64,000 bases of DNA from Saccostrea cucullata (lineage: Eukaryota), in assembly GCF_032062105.1 (NCBI RefSeq), contig NW_026935419.1, forward strand, positions 558,001 through 622,000, read 5' to 3'. The notes under the pieces were generated by a model, which was not told the DNA's origin, did no database searches, and saw only the letters and a program-made list of their open reading frames with translations. The position numbers and the translations under genes are program-made. Each line of letters starts with the position of its first letter. Within the stretch, counting starts at the first letter, position 1. This document shows positions 23,460-40,300 of the stretch, piece by piece.

Positions 23460-24250
23460 GACATTTGCGTTTTCATTTTTTTCCGAGAGGTTAGACCTTC
23501 TGAGATGATTTGGTATACAAAGGAATAAAAAATAATTGGAAAAAAAATGTTATGAACCTTGCCAAGTTGGACTCAGAAAAATTCCAATTATTGGCAGTTT
23601 CTGTTCATTTTCTAAATGCATAAGTGGAACATAATGAGATGAAATTTTGTATATATCATAAGAATGCTTCGTTTTTGACAAAGTTATGTCCCTTGGACTC
23701 AGAAAAATTCCAATATTATTTGCAGTTTCCGTTCATTTTTTTTTTCGCAGAGAATACACCTACTGAAATGAAATTTTTTGTCTAGGTCAAATTCTGTTTT
23801 GAGTATAAACTAGCCTTATTTGTCAGAGTTATGCCCCTAAGATTTAGAAAAATTCCAATTATTTGCTATTTCCGTTCATTCATAAGAATATCTGGGTCAG
23901 GTTCTGTTTTGGATATATATAATCTAGCCATATTTGACAGAAATGTGCCCCTTAGACTTAGAAAAAATTCCAGATATATGCCATTTCCGTTCATTTTCTT
24001 CGCAGAGGTTAAATTACAAAGGTCTACGGAAATGAAATTTAGTGTACAGATTTTTCATAAGAATTTCTAGGTTCAACTTTTGTTTTTGGTAACGATCGAG
24101 CCATTTTTAGCAGAATTTTGCCCCCTTAGACTTATATTTACAAAAATTCTAATTAATCCGCTTGAAATTTTGTGTGTTAAGAATACCTAGGAATGGCGTC
24201 ATATTTTGAACGTAATTCCCTTGCACTTAGAAAAATTCCAATTAATCTTC
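23460..24250. repeat. Degenerate tandem array, probably the internal repeats of a HINE
   Basis: Recurring ttatgcccct...agaaaaattccaattatt...tttccgttcattttc...gaaatgaaattt units every ~120-140 bp. Confidence 0.7.
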
Positions 24251-24472
24251 ACCGTAGCAACATAATTTTTCATATCACTACGAATTGAAATTATTAAGTT
24301 TACACTGTGTAGCACTGATTACATGCAAAGCAGGCTAGCCAGTTAAAAAGGCGGTTTTACACACAAACATATGATTTAATTGTGCGCGCACACACACAGG
24401 TTAAATGGTCGGGGGGCTGGGTCGTAAATATCCAGACACCTAAATGTCTAGGTGATCCTCTCATCCTCCGCA

Positions 24473-27400
24473 ATGCCTAACAGAAGAGACGACATCCACG
24501 CAGCTAATCGGAATTTCTGTGTGATTTTGGCCTTTCTGACCGTGTTAATCATTACCTTAATCAGTGTGGTGATTTATCTCTCAGTTAAAGACCGCGACAC
24601 CGAAGGTAAGTGATCGATCTAAACAAAAATGGTAAACGTGCGTACCTGCGTGTATCGTGCATAAAACGCATTGGCGGATCTTACGCGCGTCGTATGGCGT
24701 TTTCCGCTTAATTTTCAATTTCACTCGAAAGAATAATTACTTTGACCTTTATCCCCCCCCCAAAAAAAAAAGAGAGTACAGACATATTTTGTATGTACAT
24801 ATATACCGATAAAACAATTTTTGTATTTTTATTCCTTATTTTTTGTAGAAAACAATTCTTCAAAGATGATTACAAGTTCTCCTTTTGGAACTCATAATGG
24901 GAAGGAGGTCCTACAGTAAGTGCAGCTTTGTCGTGTCTAAAATCCATTACAAAGTTAGCAGAATGTAAAAATACTTTATACAAAATTTTCATAATAAGAC
25001 TAAATCAAGAATGGTGTAGGAAGCATGGGGGTGTTCCTAAAATTTTAATAATTTTTGCCGATATATATTACATTAATTAATAAATACGTCTAAATATAAA
25101 TATACTAAATATGAATATATGGAAATATGTTACCACAGCAATTACTTCTGATGAAATTCCGGGTGTTACTGTATTTCATTATCAAGGATTTTTTGCTTCA
25201 TAGCCCCCCCCCCCCTCCCAATGAAATTCTTCACTGCAGCCCTAATTTATGTTTTCATAAGCTGCGTTATAACAATAATTAATTTCAAAAAACCACTTAT
25301 TTACTATTTGTATTAAACATGAAACAGGGGAAATTATAGATTAACTTAGTAGCCAATAGTAGGTATATTGTTGTAATATACATTTAATGAATAGCTCAAT
25401 TCTGGAATTCAAACATGTGAAAGACATTTATTTGTAAATGATGGAAGAATTCATTCCAAAAAATATTTTTAATAAATTTTATTGGACCTTGGTGAAAACT
25501 GTTTACGTTATTTTTTGCCCCCCCCCCTTTAGTTTTCATTCTAAATTTTCCATATCTCGATTTAATTAATGTTTATTTAACATGTTTAAACATCTTCGAA
25601 ATATGTTCAAAATTTATTTTAGCAGTAATATTACCTTAAAATCGCTTGACATTTTTTTTTTTAAATTGGCATATTGATTTAAAATTCCGATTTATAGCAG
25701 ATATACCGATATTTTGAAGCGATACCACTTGTTAGTGGTATAACTCGATTCAGATTTATGTAGAATATAAAATTTTATATTTTAATATGTTAATTTTGTG
25801 CAGGTATACGTTAAAGAATAGTAAAGGGACAGAAATACGCATTCTAAACTATGGAGGAATTATCACAAATATTATGATACCGGACAAGACTGGGAAAATG
25901 GATGATATTTGTCTTGGTTTTGATGGCATGGAAGGTAATTAAACTAGCTAATTCAGACAATTGATGTCCCCCGCTTACGGTAAAAAAGAGCATGTGCAGA
26001 TGGGGGGGGGGGGGGGGCTCTCCACTGTATTTGCAGATTTATTTATCAAATAAGGAAATGCCAATATATATAGATACATGTATATAGATTTGATTGGTTA
26101 ATTTTTAAAATGTTTACAGAAAATTTGTTTTTATATAAAATAATTATAACTCTGTAATAATTATGATATTATGAGAAAGTTTATGTTCATGCCTGATCTC
26201 TCATAACTTCTTCTTTTCATATGTTGAATACTCAGTACTTTCTTCTAGTATATCTCTAAAAAAAAAAAAAAAAACTGGATAATTTGACTTTTTCTTTACT
26301 ATCATAAAAAAGTATGTCGTGAAAAGTCATATCCCATTTCATTTATTATAGATTTTACTTTAAAGTGTAATTGTCAGTAAAATTCAATGAATTGAATACT
26401 GACATTAAATGCAATATTTAATTTTTTTAATGAATTTATTTCAGGATATGCAACAAATGGTCCGTACTTTGGTGCTCTGATCGGGCGCTATGCTAACAGA
26501 ATAGCAAATGGCCGTTTTACTATTGATGGAAAAACATACCAGTTAGACATAAATAATAGTCCGAATGCCCTTCATGGAGGAAAAGTTGGATTTGATAAGG
26601 TAAGAGAAACTTGCGGCTTTTATCGTTTTTTATTATTGGAAAGAAAAATATATAAAGATTGGAAATCTGAAGATATTTTACGACTAATAAACATTCTACT
26701 AATTACTTTTTCTTGTTCAAATTAACCAAGTAAGATTCTCCCTTTTAGTCACAATAATGATTTATTTATAGCGATTATGGAGTTCGGAGATCGACGGTGA
26801 CGTCCTACAGCTGACCTACGTCAGCGCTGATGGAGAGGAGAAATACCCAGGAGAGGTCAAGGTCACCGTCCGTTACCAGCTGACCAATGACAATGAACTG
26901 GTCATTCAGTATTCAGCAACCACATCAGCAAAAACTGTCATAAATCTTACAAACCACGCCTACTTTAATTTGGCTGGACAGGTAATTGCAAAACGCAGTA
27001 ATTCTAATTCTGCGTGGGTGGGTCGAGGGGGGGGGGTTATTTGCAGCCAATTAAATTAAAACAGTTAAAACAATGTGAACATTCTAAGGAGACAATGGAC
27101 AAGTACCGTGAAGAACGTATGCATTGTTCAAAATTACAGGGGTAACTGCTTGAAAAATAGCGGTACATTTCATCATATATGCGAAGATGTAATATTATAA
27201 TGTTAATTAAAGAGTTTAGTATATCTACTGTACTCACACTATGTTTAAATAATTACAAAAATTATACGTTAATGTACCGTAGAAATTTTTGCGAAATCTT
27301 ATTTTTGCAAGATAGATATTGATTCTTGATAAGCGAAACAAAAATTTGACGTATTGGGTCATTGCTCTATATAATCCTAAGGAATACTATTATACGCGAG

Positions 27401-30400
27401 AATTTAATTTTCGGGAGCACACTGTCTCGCTTAATTACGCGATAATTAAGTTTTTGCGAATAAATAATTGTTGACTTACAGTACAGTTTACGTGCTGGAA
27501 TGAATAGGTCTCTTTTTAAAATGGTAATTTACCGGGAATTCTATGGTTCACATGTATTTTACACAACCTGAAAACATACTCTCTTACAATGATCAATAAA
27601 TTCATAGAATTTTCTATAAATCTAGCTATATGACTCCTCGTTGCATGCTAATATTAAGCTAATGTTTCGAGAAAAGGCGCAGGTAGCTCTAGATGATTTT
27701 TCTATGACCCTCTTGTTTACGAAATCTAGTACCTAAAATGTAAAGATCTGTCCCATGACTATAGATACTACATGCACTGACTTTTGACTTTCGAAGTGTG
27801 AATGATCTACGAGATGTTTTGTAGGAAATCCAACACCCAATACCCCTCTCAATACAGTTCTACAATAAAACATGGGAATTACGTAAATTGTACGTTATGA
27901 TTTGCTACATGTATTCACGGGACATTCAAAGATTTTTACGCAACTTTTTATTTGAAAAATTATGGAGAGTCATGACAACTTAATGGGGGAACAACAATTA
28001 CTGGCAAATTGGCTTTAATATACCAGGGAAAATAATTATATGCTGCTATTATTTCGGGTTGAAACATGGTGAATTGAGATAATTTCATATGCTTTGTCTG
28101 TACTTACATGTAAATGAATCTTAACAGGATTTTTTCCCTCACTAAAACTTGCTTTATCATGCTACTTTTAAGGGTTCTGGGAACATTTTTGGCCACAATG
28201 TGACTATAATGGCTGATCAATATACACCGGTGGATTCCACATCCATTCCTACTGGTAAAAGAAAAAAACTGCACTTGTGTTCATAAACATAATTTTATAA
28301 AATTCTCAATCTAGATAAATTATAGATTATCTAGATAAATCCAATATTATATTATGCGCAGCTCGTTTGAAACCCGATTGAATATCCGAATACGCTATTT
28401 CGTAATTTTCTTCACATAGATTTTGGCGCTGAAATAAACACTGTAATTATATTTATTAACAGGAGTAATAGAGAATGTAGATGGAACAGCTTGGGACTTG
28501 CGCACCAAAAAGAATCTGGGAGAAATGATTCCAACAGTTCCCGGTGATGTGGGTTACGATCATAACTACTGCTTCGGAAAAACTGGGTGGCGGAAGTACA
28601 TGGCCAGGTATGAGTAGATTAAAATGTATTGTTGTGGAAAGAATAGAAATGCGTCTTGATCGTATAGTGGTTTATTTTAGACTCTGTTATTAACTATAGA
28701 AACATAACGTACAGTATTGTGACGTAACAATAACGTTAACGTACGTTACATAAACCCGCGGATAATTTTAATGAATCATTAGAATATTAGAAAGTTCAAA
28801 TCAAATTAACAGTTTGGAAATTAAACAAGTTAATAATCACTTAATTAAGAGGTCCATTCACGATAATTTGGCTTTTGTTTTTGACACTCGATTAAAATAT
28901 ATTAAGTTCGTTCTCATTCACTTCGATTGGATATAGTTTCACAATTGGTCTGTTGGTAAGTCCATTTTTGGTCCGTAAAGTGGCAGCTCTAAGTTCTTTT
29001 GTATGAGTTCCTCGGAGTGTTTGTGACGTAGTTCTGTGTTAGATTTCTCCAACTCCATGTTTCGAGTCCGTAGATTGGCATTTTGTTTATTATCTCTGCC
29101 ATGTCCCTGAGATTCTTTTTCTGTGAATTTTCTTTTTCCTTCTCCTCAGTCTCTGTACGTTTTTCTGTCATCTGAGTTTCTTCCCTTCGTGTGTCATCAC
29201 GGATCCTTACGGAAAACATCTTTCTCTCTTCCACGGGATCCTGTAGGTTTGTAATTGATTTTCAAGTGTTTGTACTTTGATATTTAGCTCACTTATTTGC
29301 CTTTGGGCGTAATCATATCGTGACTGAAGACTGATGTTTTTAGCATTAAGATGCTCCAAGTGAGTGCTGTAGGTTTTGATATTAACAACCTGGTCCTTTA
29401 ATTCCTGAACCTCGTTATGCAAGTGTCCGTTTTCGTGCGCAAGTTTATTCATCTGTTCCATCATATCCTTCATCCCATTCTCCACACGAGTCTGAAAATT
29501 TCTTTGTTGGTCGAATTGTAACAATTTCTCTAGCAGGGTACCATTTTCTCCTTCCAATGCGTTCATCCTCTGTCTTAGTCTTCAGCTCTGACTTAAGTTG
29601 CTGTATCTCGTTAGTGAGCTTGCTACGTTCTTGAATGGAGTCCACAGTCCGACTCATCGGAGTGGAAGCTGATTTCCATAAAACACTTTTATGTCGTTGT
29701 TCAACGTTTATTTCTGTGGTATTTGGTTTGCTCGTTCCTACAATGTTGACAATTGTTGATTTGGTGGATTTTTCGTTAGTTTCATGTCGCATATATTGTG
29801 TTGCTTCTTCTGGCACTTTTTACATCTGTTGCGGGATTTACAATCTGCGGCGTGGTGGTTTCCTAAGCAGTTGAAACATAATTTTTCCGTTAACAGTCGA
29901 ATCTTGCTACTTATGTACTTTCTTACAGTCCCCTGGGAAGATTTTTACAACAATAAATGCATTCTTTATCTCTGTTGTTTCGACATAAGGAGTTGACTCT
30001 TTTGTTTTCTGGTTGTGTCCATAATGAACATGGCGTTGTTTCTTTGAGGCTCCGGTAAGAAACATTGCTGTTGCGTGGAATCGATCGCTGTTTTCAATCT
30101 GGCCTGATTCAAGGATTTTGACTTCCTTGCTGATAGCTTTACGAAGATTGTGTAGTGAAATGTTGTCACCATCGTACTCACGTGCAATGTTTTTCCTGAT
30201 TTCAGCTGGTAGCTTGTTCATTATGACTGGAATAAGTAAAGCTCCGTACATCTCTTGTTTTTGTCCTAGACACTCTAAACTCCTGACATGAGATTCCAAG
30301 CAGTCTCCATAATTTCTTAAACTGATGGCGTCGTTTTCGGGGCTTGCAGTTCCATAAGTGCTCTCATGTGACCATTGATGATTTTTTGTGGTTGACCAAA

Positions 30401-32035
30401 TCGTTCCTTGAGCAGGTCTATGGCGGTTTCGTAATTTGCGTTTGTGAGAGTAAATCCTGCAATGGTTTGTGCTGCTGCGTCCTGTAATTGAGCCTTGAGA
30501 TACGAAAACTTTTGAATTGGTGTTAAAGTTTGGTTGCGGTGAATTGTTGATTCAAATGAATCCCAAAACGTATTCCATTGTAGTATATCCCCGTCAAAAT
30601 GTGGAAGATTTAGTTTCGGTAGTCGATGATTATTTGTGACCTGGTTGGATGGTAATGACAAAAAAATTTTCTGCCAATCGTGGTTACTTTGTTCATCGAG
30701 ATCAGTGGCACTGGCAGGAAAATTGTTCAGAATATTCTCACAAGCCGTTTCACTTGAATTAATTGCAGCTGATGTGTTTACATTACTATCATGAATTTCT
30801 AAGGCGGGTACAAAACACTCAACACTGGCATTCAAAGTTTTACATGAAACTTTTTCTGTAAATGTTTCTATTTTCTTAATTTTGCAATCGAATTCGTACA
30901 TATACTCATCTGTGTTTGTGATTTCTTCTTCTATGTCCTCTTCAGATAATGCGTCTAATATGCGTTCATTTAGTTCTTGTAAAGTTTGTCTTTTTTGCAT
31001 TAGGGACTTTCTGATTATTTCGATTTCCTCCGTTACTTCACTGGCTGTATTTTCTTTCAGGTCCAAAAATCGTCCGAAAAGTTTCGTCACCGCTGATCTG
31101 TTACCGGCCCGTATGGCTTTTAGTCTTCCTTCCATTTTACGTATATTATGTAAACATTCCGTCGATCACGGCACCAAAATTGTTGTAGAAATGCGTCTTG
31201 ATCGTATAGTGGTTTATTTTAGACTCTGTTATTAACTATAGAAACATAACGTACAGTATTGTGACGTAACAATAACGTTAACGTACGTTACATAAACCCG
31301 CGGATAATCCGTGACATGTATGTTCCAGATTAGACGCAGGGGACATATCAAAGTTTTGAAAGTAGGGAGGGAGGTTGCCAGCCAGAGGAAAAAAAATTAC
31401 CTGAAAAAATCGACAAGCAAATAGAAGTTTAAACTTGAAAATCCTATTTCCGGGGGGGGGGGGGGGGGGGGGGGGGGGTGGAGTGAATTGAATCTCTTTC
31501 AATAACATCATACATCACCCCTATTTGTCTATTGTTATGTTGTAAATTTTGCCACCCGATAAATTCAAATCTTACAGACTTACAACATGGCACTATACTG
31601 AAACCGGGGGGGGGGGGGGGGGGGGGTCAATGAACAAAGGCATTTAACAACTTCTTTTTTTTTTCTTTTAAAGAGTGGAACATCCGAACACGGGTCGGTA
31701 TCTGGAAATGTACAGCACTGAACCAGGTGTTCAGTTTTATACGGCATTCTACCTAAACGAAACTGGAAAGGGCGGGGCCAAATACGGGAAATTTGATGCC
31801 TTTTGCCTCGAAGCCCAGCATTATCCAGATAGTCCAAACAAAGTAGGTTTCAGTGGCTACATTTCAGATATAATTTCGAGAGAGATTAACTCTGTTGCAC
31901 ATGTTCAAATGGTTTCTTTTCATAAATATTTGTTATTATTATTTTTTTTATTTTCAGCCAAATTTCCCCACAACATTACTAGCTCCATCGGAGACGTATC
32001 TACAAACCACGACATACAAATTTGGTGTCATGTGA
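24473..32035 (+). CDS. GALM: Aldose 1-epimerase (galactose mutarotase) paralog A, with N-terminal transmembrane extension, ~389 aa
   Basis: Exons 24473-24605, 24849-24915, 25804-25934, 26445-26599, 26772-26981, 28173-28254, 28463-28607, 31674-31842, 31958-32035 (1170 nt). Motifs [55 protein letters not shown] at 32121. Confidence 0.93.
27275..27483. mobile_element. Small TA-MITE in a GALM-A intron
   Basis: taccgta...ttacagta ends; core cgagaat..aattttcg.gagca.ac..tctcgc.taat.acgcga shared with a copy at ~55640-55730. Confidence 0.6.
28630..31316 (-). mobile_element. Non-autonomous BEL/Pao LTR retrotransposon in GALM-A intron 7
   Basis: Short near-identical LTRs (31181-31316, TG...CA; 28630-~28766); 5-bp TSD TGTAT at 28625-28629 and 31317-31321; PBS TGGTGCCGTGA (31166-31176, complementary to tRNA-His 3' end); DUF1759-type gag; Zn knuckles; integrase C-terminal tail [18 protein letters not shown] at ~28915-28990. 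Confidence 0.92.
29790..31135 (-). pseudogene. Frameshifted BEL/Pao Gag
   Basis: ORFs 30317-31135 ([29 protein letters not shown]...QKFSYLK...[14 protein letters not shown]) and 29907-30299 ([11 protein letters not shown]), then [27 protein letters not shown] in another frame. Confidence 0.88.
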
Positions 32036-35475: not shown

Positions 35476-37315
35476 TGGTCTAAAAAAAAAAAGGTCTTTA
35501 CCATGTTTACTCTGATGTCTCTTATTTGGTGGGGCAATAGGGCAAGGTCATGAGCAAAGTCCAGGTCTTCTAAAAACTATGATCAATAAATAGCTCCCAG
35601 CCTCCCTGCTATCAGTAACATTTGATCTGGGTTAATTTTATAAATAATCGTTACCCTTTAGCAAATTTCATACAGTGTCAATTTTTGAAGGCTACTTTCC
35701 CTACGAGTAATGATATGATGTTGTATCTTGGACCTTGAACGCTTTAACAAACGTAAACAAATATTGTTTCATAGATGAAAACTGAAAATTTCAAAATTGA
35801 AAATATTACATGTAGTTACAATAGATGAACTTATCTTATTAACTGGAATACACGTAAGTCTACTCACGACATCTCTTGAAATTCAGGTCAAGTATTCCGA
35901 AACTTTTCTTTCCACGTGAATCATTCCGGTAAATTTTTAAACGTACAATTTCCTCTTCTGTTTTCGCAAAAGTGTTATTTGGTTTTGCTTTGTAGAAGTT
36001 GTTTGTACGTGTAAGTTTTTTTAGTCGTTTAATGACACGGGGTTGTAAGTATGGGAATATGAACAGGTGTGCATTTACGTTGTACTTTTGCTTGTAAAAG
36101 TACAATCTTATAATTTTTGTTGTTGTTGTTCAGCATTGTCCGTCGAACGAATTTTGCTTCTTGTTTGGTGAGATGTAACCGTTATGTTTATGTTAAGAAA
36201 ACTACTATAATATACTGTAGCTGATTTTTTGAATGCTGTTATACAGAATGGCCGAGTCGACTATCCATTCAAACGAATTTAAAAAAAAAGGGGGGGGGCT
36301 TAACACCAGATCAGCATGCTGCAGCAGATTAATGATAACATATGACCAGTCTAAACGAACTCCTGAAAAGGAGTTATCAACAGTTAGAAATTGAGGCTAA
36401 AATAATGTGGAAAATAAATATGTGCTTAGGCACAAACACAAAAAAAATGTTGATTTAGGGGAAAAATTATGAATCTGCAAAAATGCCTACACGCACAAAA
36501 TGCTACAAAAATGGTAGGATAAGAGTATATTTATTAAATTTAAGATTCTATTTGTGACTTAAATTACTTTCTCAGTTGACATTTCAAGCATTTCAAGCAT
36601 TCTTATTAGAGTAAAAAATCAAACTTTCAACATATTTTAAAGAAGCATAATAAAAAGGAGATATATGAAAAATAGAACAACATGTGTTGCATCTGTTATA
36701 AGCTTCTCCATCTTTTACTTTTTAAAGTATCTGGTTAAATTGGAGGATAGGGTATAGGTAATAAGAATTTACCATGGAAATATATAAATTGAAAAGCAGA
36801 GTATTAAATCGTAAGGATTGCAATTTTTCCTTTCTCCTTTCTTGCTTTACTTTGTATTTTTTTCTGTTGTTGTTCAATGTTGTTCAAGATGTGGATCATG
36901 GGTTAGGGTTGGACTAAAATTGGAAATTAATTTAGTTAACAAAATGCATATACGGTACATGAAAAGGCATGAAAAAAAAGAACAGATAAAAAAAAAAGAA
37001 AAGAAATATATGTTTAAAAATCTTCCCCAGAGGAGTAAAGCCAAGTACCAGTAAGTCATCTGGATATACTTAATGTTATGTAGATTAAATCTATAAACCC
37101 TCAAGGCAAGACTGGTACCACAATATTAAAAAAAATATATTTCAAAATTAGCGGGTAAAATCTTATAATAATAATCTTCTGAAGTCAGCAGAAAGCAAAC
37201 GATTCAGGTGAATATGGTGGCCCATGGGCCTCTGCTGTGTGTATGGTCACTGTATCATGATTATTTTTTGTTTGTTTGCTTTGAATAGAAGACTGTTAAC
37301 TAACAAACATCTACC

Positions 37316-40300
37316 ATGATCACAAGTTCTCCATTTGGGACCTATGATGGGAAAGAAGTCATACAGTAAGTGATATTTGATTTAAAAAAAAATAATTCAT
37401 GTAAAATGCACCAATAATGTTTTTAAACTTGGTTATATTTTCCTCTCTCTTATCTAAATTAAAATTACACTGATATAAACAGGAGAATGTCTATAAATTT
37501 ACAGTTTAAAGCAGTGGAGAACAAAAATTTAATTGTCATGTACATTTGCATTATACACAGTTCATGAAAAGTTTGTCATGCTAATAAATACCAAATTGCT
37601 TATTCACAAAAATAAGGTGTCATGAAAATACTAGTAAAGTGATCTACAGTATACCATGTAAGTGGAAATTTTATTGAGACAAAGAACTATATGCCGTATT
37701 AACCAACATTTGCCCCCCAAAATCAAACTTTGATGGAGTAACATTTAATTAAGTCCTTAAACAGGGGAGTATATGCTGACTTCAACGCACTGAAGAATTT
37801 CATAAGTAATGACGTCATATGTACGTAATGACGTCACAAATATGACGTAATTTCAGTTTTTTATGAATTTTGCAGAAAAATGTACATATTTCGTCGATAT
37901 TTTAAATAAAAGTCACCGAGCGCATGTGTGTTCAGGATAAATATTTTGATATAATGGGTAGAATGATAATATCAATGGAATATGTCAATACTGTTCCTGA
38001 ACACACATGCGCTCTATAAATTTTAAAGCTTAAATTGTTGAAATTTTGTCCATTTTGTCCTCTTTCTGAAAAAGGATATAAAATCGGACTAGTTTGTGAC
38101 GTCATAAAAACAGAAATTGTGAATACACTTCTCTGGAACTATAATATTTTCTGTTAACTTATATTTCTCGTACAATTTATTGAATTCAGCACATTTCATG
38201 AAGTTTTCAAAATTTGACTTTTGTGGGGGCAAACATATGCAATATACCGCATATAGTTCTTTAGCGATTTGTCCTTAAAAACTGGTAATTTATTTTTAGC
38301 GAGATGTTATTTAAGCGATTTTAAAAAGCACATTAAAGAAACTATTACATGTAAAACGCAATTAATTTTTAGCGATATTCAATTTTAACGATCTCGACAC
38401 CCTCGGTAATAATGCCAAAATTAAATCCTCGCTAAAAATTCTACTTATACGGTATATGCAAATTTAAGTGTTGTTTGATGGGGATCACACTTCACTGGGT
38501 TTAGTCCCTTATAAGGAAATATGTTTAGTTATACATGTAATAGCATTAGTCTTTTTAGACAAATTATTTTTGCTAACAAGGTCATTACAACAACCATAAA
38601 ATTTTGAATTGCAGACCTTAAACAAGGTTGTTGAAACCCTTGTAACATCAACTTTTCAGTACGTAGCAAGCCTTGTTTTAAAAATTAATTGTACTCAGAG
38701 CAAACTCTCAGGTAAAGAATAAGTTGGGAGATATAGACACCATAAACAGGTGATAGTGGAATATTAATTCATAAAAAGAAGGGAAGTTGTTGTTGGAAAA
38801 TCTGAATCGAATTCATTGTGTTTGTCAGAATTTTTGTTCTTATGAGTAAACTTTATTTGGAATTATTTGGATATTAAACTAGAATGACAATTTATGTAGG
38901 GACTTTCTTTTATCAAATGTGTGCAGATATACCCTAAAGAACAGTCAAGGCACAGAAATACAAATCCTAAATTTTGGAGGAATCATCAAAACGATTTTGG
39001 TACCAGATAAAAATGGAAAGATGGAAGACATTTGTCTTGGTTATGATGACATGAAAGGTGTGTTTGAAAATTTCTTCCTGTGTCCTGTTTTTTGTAAAGG
39101 AAGAGACCTCTAGTTGGAAAAAAAGACAATTGATTAAAAAATGTTGGATAAACAAATTATTGGTCTATATACATGTACAATTAAAAATAATTGCTTTGTG
39201 ATTTTAGTGGTAGAACTGTTTTAAGATGAAGATTTTTTCTTTTAATCTGGAAACACAGAAACTAAAAAATGTTTAAGAAAATTTTCTATAATTTACCATT
39301 GGAAAAAGAAGTGAAAATATGTATGTCTAAACTCTAAAAATGTTGTTTCTTTGCCTAGGGTATGAGACAAATCCCTTTTACTTGGGTACTCTGTGTGGAC
39401 GCTTTGCCAACAGGATTGCAAATGCCTCTTTTATTATTGATGGGAAAACATATGAATTAGACAAAAATGATGGTCAGAATTCGTTACATGGAGGAAAAGG
39501 TGGTTTCCATAAAGTAAAGTACTTTTGATATTTACATTCAATTTACTACATATAGTTGAAACCCATATTTTATTGAAAGAATTTGCTACATAAAGGTCAA
39601 AGCCAAATTTGAAGGAATGACTGTTTTGGGGTGCCATGCTGTTTTGTCTTTTTTAAAATCTTGAAGAATTAGATATACATTTTTTTTAAATTTGAATTTC
39701 TAAACTCCATGATTGCTGTTTAAAATGATTTGGTCATAACAAGCAGTTATAATGCTTTCTTGCAGAAAGTATGGACTCCAGAGATTGACGGTGACGTCCT
39801 GAAATTGACCTACGTCAGCCCTGACGGGGAGGATAAATTCCCTGGGGAACTCAAGGTCACTCTCTGTTACCAGCTGACCGATGACAATGAATTGGTCATG
39901 CAGTACTCAGCAACTACATCAGCAAAAACTGTCATCAATCTGACAAACCACGCCTACTTTAATTTGGCTGGACAGGTAATCGGTTTGTGATGAATGTATG
40001 CAGATTCGTCTGAGTACTACAATGCACTATGAAAATTCAGCACAATACAAGGTATTAAACTTTTTCCTTTTACAGTTTTGATTTTTTGCAATGGACTTCT
40101 TGTTTTTTAGGGTGCTGAGAACATCTTTGACCATGATGTGACCATAAAAGCTGATCAGTATACACCACAAGATTCCACTTACATTCCAACAGGTAATGTA
40201 AAGAGATAGATAGTGAGAATACATGTATATCAAATTTGTGAAGCTTTTTTTTTTTTTACATCAAACCATAAAACATATTGATGTACACTTACTGAAAAAC

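Follow-up and report, generated by a model that had tools for sequence, protein, structure and literature searches.

An oyster galactose mutarotase with a predicted N-terminal membrane anchor of bivalve-wide distribution

Vertebrate galactose mutarotase (GALM), that of humans included, is a soluble cytosolic enzyme of the Leloir pathway. From plants, one report (PMC5622589) describes the aldose-1-epimerase-like protein NbAELP as carrying a signal sequence, "unlike" bacterial and mammalian mutarotases, as detected in membrane and cell-wall fractions and as predicted to be N-glycosylated. Here we analyze a GALM-like gene of the oyster Saccostrea cucullata, hereafter paralog A, which lies together with a second copy, paralog B, in a stretch of 64,000 nucleotides (RefSeq assembly GCF_032062105.1, contig NW_026935419.1, positions 558,001 to 622,000 of the forward strand; this whole stretch is referred to as the window, and all coordinates are counted within it). 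The product of paralog A shares the fold, the family and the catalytic His/His/Asp/Glu residues of human GALM (PDB 1SNZ/1SO0); the 344-residue human chain, the residue 20 of which aligns with residue 64 of paralog A, has no counterpart of the first 50 residues, which comprise a tail, a predicted membrane span and a stalk.

We consider it fairly probable that paralog A is the ortholog of a bivalve-wide anchored mutarotase that is inserted into the endoplasmic reticulum (ER) as a type II protein facing the lumen or the outside, that the same gene also makes a cytosolic product, and that the anchor is older than the duplication separating paralogs A and B. According to this proposal, exon 1 would supply an uncleaved N-terminal signal anchor that inserts into the ER with the N terminus remaining cytosolic, so that the whole catalytic domain would come to lie at the cell surface or on the lumenal side of the secretory or endo-lysosomal pathway. 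There the anchored enzyme might speed the interconversion between the alpha and beta forms of free hexoses such as the products of glycosidases, and the equilibrated anomers might serve anomer-selective transporters or enzymes in digestive or absorptive cells. The same gene would yield a 339-residue cytosolic Leloir form by means of an alternative first exon or leaky scanning to the AUG at 24866, and the anchor exon would have arisen before the oyster A/B duplication, with paralog B being without it.

Gene model and transcripts of paralog A

The coding sequence of paralog A amounts to 1167 bases, or 389 residues, in nine exons, with exons 3-9 being bounded from six-frame open stretches, Pfam exon matches and read joints. 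The features of the locus, all on the + strand, are as follows:

24412..24472, +: 5' untranslated region (UTR), minimum extent; the 5' end of the contig from RNA run X4 lies at 24412, with thin read depth to about 24264
24444-24455, +: upstream open reading frame (ORF) of three codons, ATG TCT AGG TGA, in the 5' UTR, 29 nt upstream of the main ATG
24473..24605, +: exon 1, coding part; 14-residue basic tail, 24-residue helix and start of the stalk; donor GTAAGT
24515..24586, +: predicted membrane span, codons 15-38; Kyte-Doolittle mean over 19 residues (KD19) 3.13; AlphaFold helix at residues 5-39
24606..24848, +: intron 1, 243 nt, GT..AG; RNA joint in runs X4, X22 and X21
24849..24915, +: exon 2; stalk codons (E)NNSSK, followed by the ancestral start Met (24866) and the beginning of the mutarotase domain
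25804..25934, +: exon 3; RNA joints in all four runs
26445..26599, +: exon 4; His154 in NALHGG; Pfam match and reads
26772..26981, +: exon 5; His224 in LTNHAY; Pfam match and reads
28173..28254, +: exon 6; HNVT sequon; reads
28463..28607, +: exon 7; Asp292; reads
31674..31842, +: exon 8; Glu354 in FCLEAQ; Pfam match; loose read ends past 28608 match the start of this exon
31958..32035, +: exon 9 and stop codon; sequence-based, its peptide being an exact substring of the public protein P0167

Read in frame on the + strand, positions 24473-24604 specify 44 residues made up of the basic tail, the hydrophobic helix and the first residues of the stalk. The 133 coding nucleotides of exon 1 end at the donor G/gtaagt (24605/24606) and are joined in phase 1, across the acceptor ttgtag/AA, to the 67 coding nucleotides of exon 2 beginning at 24849; the junction codon GAA (E) is followed by NNSSK and then by the Met at 24866. 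Exon 1 is present in a single copy genome-wide. A search with exon 5 against a representative library recovered P0013, a transcript-derived protein with an N-terminal span, and among the relatives of P0013 is P0167, a 389-residue protein named "galactose mutarotase-like isoform X1 [Saccostrea cucullata]". Because the peptides of all nine window exons are exactly contained in P0167 at the expected offsets, the paralog A model is already part of the public RefSeq annotation; our full-length analyses (Pfam, structure and alignment) were based on P0167. An initial annotation of this DNA had predicted both the in-frame phase 1 splice and the 389-residue product: a spanning RNA contig and raw reads carry the joint from 24605 to 24849, and the product is identical to the public isoform X1. 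The novelty that it had claimed for the protein is weakened, as the model was already a public RefSeq isoform.

RNA from four runs (X21, X22, X1 and X4) was mapped over 4901 letters of the window at a likeness threshold of 95%. A contig of 564 nt from X4 covers 24412-24605 along with exons 2 and 3 and extends into exon 4, with the joint from 24605 to 24849 flanked by GT..AG; it thus joins exons 1-4 in a single path at a depth of 34.6, compared with 51.7 for exons 5-7. The exon 1-2 joint is additionally carried by one raw read from X22 and two from X21, the latter pair being placed as 24605 to 24854 with extra letters that derive from an allele carrying an insertion where exon 2 begins. Raw reads over the exon 2-3 joint number 7 in X21 and 16 in X22. 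Most reads are 95-99% like the window, and the X4 allele of exon 1 departs from it by six letters and a 3-nt insert in 194 nt. As this divergence sits at the mapping threshold, exon 1 is undercounted, and its deficit in raw-read depth (about 2.3-2.9, against 5.1-8.1 in the bin containing the 67-nt exon 2) is partly technical.

Comparison of the window with the RNA samples revealed five substitutions in exon 1, of which four are synonymous third-position changes and one is I8L, and, ahead of the inner Met, two insertions that both keep the frame, one of 3 nt following codon 2 and one of 15 nt in exon 2. The numbers are small and all point in one direction, suggesting that the variation in exon 1 has coding-sequence character. 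The 15-nt insertion is a tandem duplication at the start of exon 2 (24849-24865) that repeats the NNSSK stalk unit; it is carried by the X4 contig, by two X21 reads and probably by the head of the X1 contig, while the window allele has a single copy. The X1 contig opens with ten letters unlike the window; these were considered as an alternative first exon and rejected, as their pattern followed by GT has no match in the window with up to one mismatch. Apart from a single base they agree with the end of the duplicated stalk unit of X4, and they more likely belong to the 15-nt duplication allele.

Distribution of the anchor and the history of the two paralogs

Homolog searches recovered 17 bivalve proteins, that of the window included, with an N-terminal span having a KD19 of at least 2.5. 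Eight of them are named, coming from Saccostrea cucullata, Pecten maximus, Mizuhopecten yessoensis, Argopecten irradians, Mytilus californianus, Sinanodonta woodiana, Mactra antiquata and Tegillarca granosa. These eight are drawn from 24 named bivalve proteins, a ninth of which has an internal span (a fused model from Pinctada imbricata); several of the named proteins devoid of a span are labelled isoform X2 or X3, the corresponding X1 isoforms being outside the lists compared. The shared architecture consists of a tail of 7-16 residues with basic residues at its end (16/17), a Cys at span position 2-4 (15/17), a span of precisely 24 residues (13/17), which in many cases ends in (V/I)IYLA(T/V)(K/R), and a stalk of about 10-20 residues in most. 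Outside the oysters the stalk has a Cys in most species, through which two chains could be paired. The Met at the ancestral start is retained in 14 of the 17.

We then compared exon 1 with these N termini against 200 shuffles that kept the composition of tail, span and flank. For 10 of the 16 bivalve comparators none of the 200 shuffles reached the real score, as would be expected of an orthologous exon; the ten comprise three oyster transcripts, two mussels, Sinanodonta, Mactra, Tegillarca and two heterodont-like transcripts. In a set of 31 named gastropod proteins plus one from a brachiopod, such a span occurs only in P0280 of Bulinus, which was rejected as a homolog of the anchor on account of having no similarity to exon 1 in the same test. 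At the level of protein sequence, then, the anchor architecture appears to be conserved across bivalves. The initial annotation had called for a search for the same N-terminal exon in other molluscs, and its presence across bivalves at the protein level bears out that expectation; the accompanying claim that paralog A had gained the exon does not stand, as besides oysters the anchor is found in mussels, in one unionid and one mactrid species and in an ark clam.

Several of the public models appear to be fused or oddly extended at the N terminus, namely P0270 (Pinctada), P0177 (Ostrea, isoform X3), P0048 (Mya) and P0343 (Dreissena, isoform X1). Among these, P0270 combines a piece of one GALM copy with a second copy in which the span and stalk lie internally.

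A maximum-likelihood tree was computed for the catalytic domain alone, with 58 rows over 342 columns and bacteria as the outgroup, leaving out the Dreissena X1 model (P0343), which has an aberrant N-terminal part, the Pinctada model (P0270) and the Mya model (P0048). The bivalves form a clade (97/89) with span-bearing proteins in both of its halves, and the eight oyster rows form one clade within it (100/100), uniting the window protein, its ortholog in S. echinata, Ostrea, a Magallana-like set and the S. echinata ortholog of paralog B. The branch of paralog B is long and lies inside the oyster clade, its exact position there not being fixed. From this nesting we infer that the anchor exon predates the A/B duplication. 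The 14 changes in the span label on this tree were discarded as a count of gains and losses, because many of the rows without a span are X2 isoforms of the same genes.

The first coding exon of paralog B has the following form:

37301..37365, +: paralog B, first coding exon; in-frame TAA at 37301-37303, five codons before the ATG at 37316

Since this stop codon precedes the ATG by five codons, an N-terminal extension of the reading frame is impossible, in keeping with the initial description of paralog B as a copy without an anchor; a scan for hydrophobic ORFs within 6 kb upstream likewise found no anchor-like ORF. By these sequence criteria paralog B has lost or lacks the anchor. The genome has six further GALM-like loci (C9115, C598, C7447, C7430; L011-L022), and a tblastn search with exon 1 against paralog B and these six gave only chance matches. 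In the upstream scan (up to 6 kb), paralog B and four of the loci had no hydrophobic ORF, and C598 and C7447 had only low-complexity T-rich stretches. The exon peptides of C598 are nearly identical to those at 186-196 kb of C9115, and the C598 copy may be a haplotig.

In Argopecten and Mizuhopecten the domains of isoform X1, with the span, and isoform X2, without it, are identical, which indicates alternative first exons of one gene. In paralog A there is no ATG in the mRNA between 24473 and 24866, so that leaky scanning could also yield the 339-residue form. Hence, by analogy with the scallop isoforms, the paralog A gene probably also makes a cytosolic form.

Catalytic domain, predicted topology and competing readings

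In P0167 the Pfam domain Aldose_epim (PF01263) spans residues 67-385 with a score of 297.7 bits against a cut-off of 27, which places the protein in this family, and the best match among solved structures is human GALM (1SNZ; E 7.8e-98 over residues 64-388). His154, His224, Asp292 and Glu354 align with the catalytic and sugar-binding residues of 1SNZ. H154, H224 and E354 are invariant in all 40 aligned sequences and D292 is retained in at least 90% of them; judged by this alignment paralog A has its catalytic residues intact. The 40-sequence alignment also served to build an AlphaFold model with a mean predicted local distance difference test score (pLDDT) of 88.7, in which residues 5-39 form a helix, residues 42-48 are a linker of low confidence and a beta-sandwich domain begins at residue 51.

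With its KD19 of 3.13, the hydrophobic segment of exon 1 is one of only two segments reaching at least 3.0 in the six frames of the window, and it is no chance product of an AT-rich genome. A Pfam search with exon 1 alone returned membrane-like matches, all of them sub-threshold. The segment forms a single N-terminal span of 24 residues (15-38) with a juxtamembrane Cys, followed by a stalk of about 12 residues that is disordered in the model. The charge difference between the C- and N-terminal flanks is -3 in paralog A and negative in all 17 span-bearing bivalve proteins (range -1 to -7), with a net charge of +2 to +5 on the N side and a neutral to acidic C flank. The positive-inside and charge-difference rules predict the more positive flank to be cytosolic; applied to these flanks, they predict an N-in/C-out protein with the catalytic domain in the lumen or outside, in agreement with the type II anchor of the initial annotation. 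As stated there too, the stalk has NNS and NSS sequons, and paralog A has HNVT where paralog B has HDVT. The span-bearing proteins average 3.76 N-X-S/T sequons in the domain (gastropods 2.35, spanless bivalve paralogs 2.50) and 1.94 Cys residues (about 3.5 in the others), a contrast that hints at exposure to the secretory pathway, albeit one computed on related sequences that are not phylogenetically independent.

Certain observations weigh against an anchored, lumen-facing enzyme as the principal product. Very long and highly hydrophobic anchors with short N tails can insert in the N-out orientation. The stalk sequons N46 and N47 lie only 8-9 residues from the span and, given that sequons very near the membrane are poorly glycosylated, are probably too close for efficient modification. 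In the shuffle test three scallops and the comparators lgn165, lgn151 and lgn013 did not individually exceed the shuffles; the scallop N termini have the same anchor architecture. Finally, raw reads on the exon 1-2 joint are few (three, from two runs), and the contig of 1027 nt from X1 covers exons 2-7 without exon 1, no X1 contig being found on that exon; together these point to the anchored form perhaps being a minor or tissue-limited isoform.

Three other readings of exon 1 have to be set against the one that we favor. An unlikely one is that the segment is a cleaved signal peptide, or that the stalk is cut after insertion, such that the mature enzyme would be soluble and secreted, lysosomal or part of a digestive fluid. 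The disordered linker would suit this reading, and many type II enzymes are shed. Exported soluble mutarotases are also common in bacteria, with many of the matches having N-terminal signal-like segments, and the plant NbAELP is described as a secreted aldose-1-epimerase-like glycoprotein (PMC5622589). Set against this, a 24-residue core behind a 14-residue n-region far exceeds the usual signal peptide, the residues closing the span (L-S-V, L-A-T) do not, by eye, fit the rule of small residues at -3 and -1, and the conservation of both length and sequence of the span would be unusual for a mere signal peptide. The hydrophobic core is probably too long for an ordinary cleaved signal peptide, and we predict that it stays uncleaved.

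The second is that the catalytic domain is cytosolic, as a result of N-out/C-in insertion into the ER or of anchoring in the outer membrane of an organelle, for example beside a sugar transporter. The short N tail of 7-16 residues and the long, very hydrophobic span may favor translocation of the N terminus, the catalytic domain is the same as that of the cytosolic isoform, and most of the sequences have a basic residue right after the span. The uniformly negative flank-charge difference, with its positive N side and neutral to acidic C flank, as well as the fewer Cys residues and more numerous sequons of the span-bearing proteins, speak against it, and we regard it as improbable. We hold it very improbable that exon 1 matters little, being just a minor 5' exon, and that the working product is a cytosolic 339-residue enzyme made from other transcripts or the inner AUG: the low read support for exon 1, the X1 contig without it, the three-codon upstream ORF at 24444 and the existence of anchor-less isoform X2 models would fit, but the anchor is conserved across bivalve subclasses, the variation is synonymous-biased with in-frame indels, and the X4 contig links exon 1 to exons 2-4 in one path at a depth of 34.6, against 51.7 for exons 5-7.

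Returning to the type II enzyme with a cytosolic counterpart, we tentatively extend the proposal to a two-compartment mutarotase gene kept since before the split of the bivalve subclasses, a possibility to which we attach distinctly less confidence. In this extension one promoter or first exon would give a cytosolic Leloir form, and the other a type II form with its active site turned toward the endo-lysosomal lumen or exposed apically on digestive or gill cells, where it might equilibrate the anomers released by glycosidases during intracellular digestion or the uptake of dissolved sugars. If correct, this would furnish a working example of a mutarotase assisting sugar transport, an old idea that to our knowledge has never been proven.

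The surroundings of the gene contain repeated elements. Just upstream of the 5' UTR, at 23800-24300, similar units with "ttagaaaaattccaat" are repeated several times. In intron 5, about 50 nt at 27357-27411 have an RNA word depth of 200-519, with as many as 8 contigs in a single run and loose ends to either side, and look like a transcribed repeat common to other loci. Intron 7 has an insertion with the same peptide-like stretch at both of its ends (28630-28766 and about 31100-31232), the left repeat being covered by RNA contigs and reads, and a minus-strand ORF of 272 aa at 30317-31135; this insertion is predicted to be retroelement-like, its end repeats being consistent with long terminal repeats.

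Comparison with described systems

No paper on a membrane-anchored animal mutarotase was found in the full-text literature searched, which excluded most subscription journals and all supplements. Both the enzyme family and the type of anchor are ordinary; it is their combination in an animal, its conservation in bivalves and the dual-product gene that are undescribed in that literature. What is new here is the reading of the sequence and its phylogenetic spread. The sequence itself has been annotated automatically and is already public, and the practical value is modest. Mutarotase in animals is regarded as a soluble helper of galactose metabolism in the cytosol. If the reading is true, anomer interconversion matters outside the cytosol in animals, with a conserved anchored and probably lumen-facing isoform in a whole class of filter feeders, which bears on the intracellular digestion of algal glycans and the uptake of sugars by bivalves. 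The gene would also offer a clear example from nature of dual targeting in which a first exon was added and a former 5' UTR became a stalk.

The nearest counterparts are the RefSeq isoform X1 models of Pecten maximus, Mizuhopecten yessoensis, Argopecten irradians and Mytilus californianus, which have the tail, the 24-residue span, the stalk and the domain of paralog A; these are automatic models whose names are silent on a membrane anchor. In its predicted layout paralog A also resembles the Golgi-type type II enzymes, in which a short basic cytoplasmic tail precedes one N-terminal span and a short stalk then leads to a catalytic domain on the lumenal side; the catalytic domains are unrelated, and the 24-residue span of paralog A gives no clear call on the compartment. 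The plant NbAELP/gp40 similarly has an aldose-1-epimerase-like domain sent to the secretory pathway by an N-terminal signal, as is proposed for paralog A, but is set apart by being described as a secreted cell-wall glycoprotein with regulatory roles in plants and no conserved type II anchor. The plant secretory form and the one proposed for bivalves are likely to be of independent origin. Lastly, the exported periplasmic or lipoprotein mutarotases of bacteria belong to the same family (49-56% identity), many with N-terminal signal-like segments; unlike the eukaryotic signal anchor encoded by a separate alternative exon, their signals are cleaved or of the lipoprotein type, and the existence of bacterial mutarotases with export signals implies that this fold works outside the cytosol.

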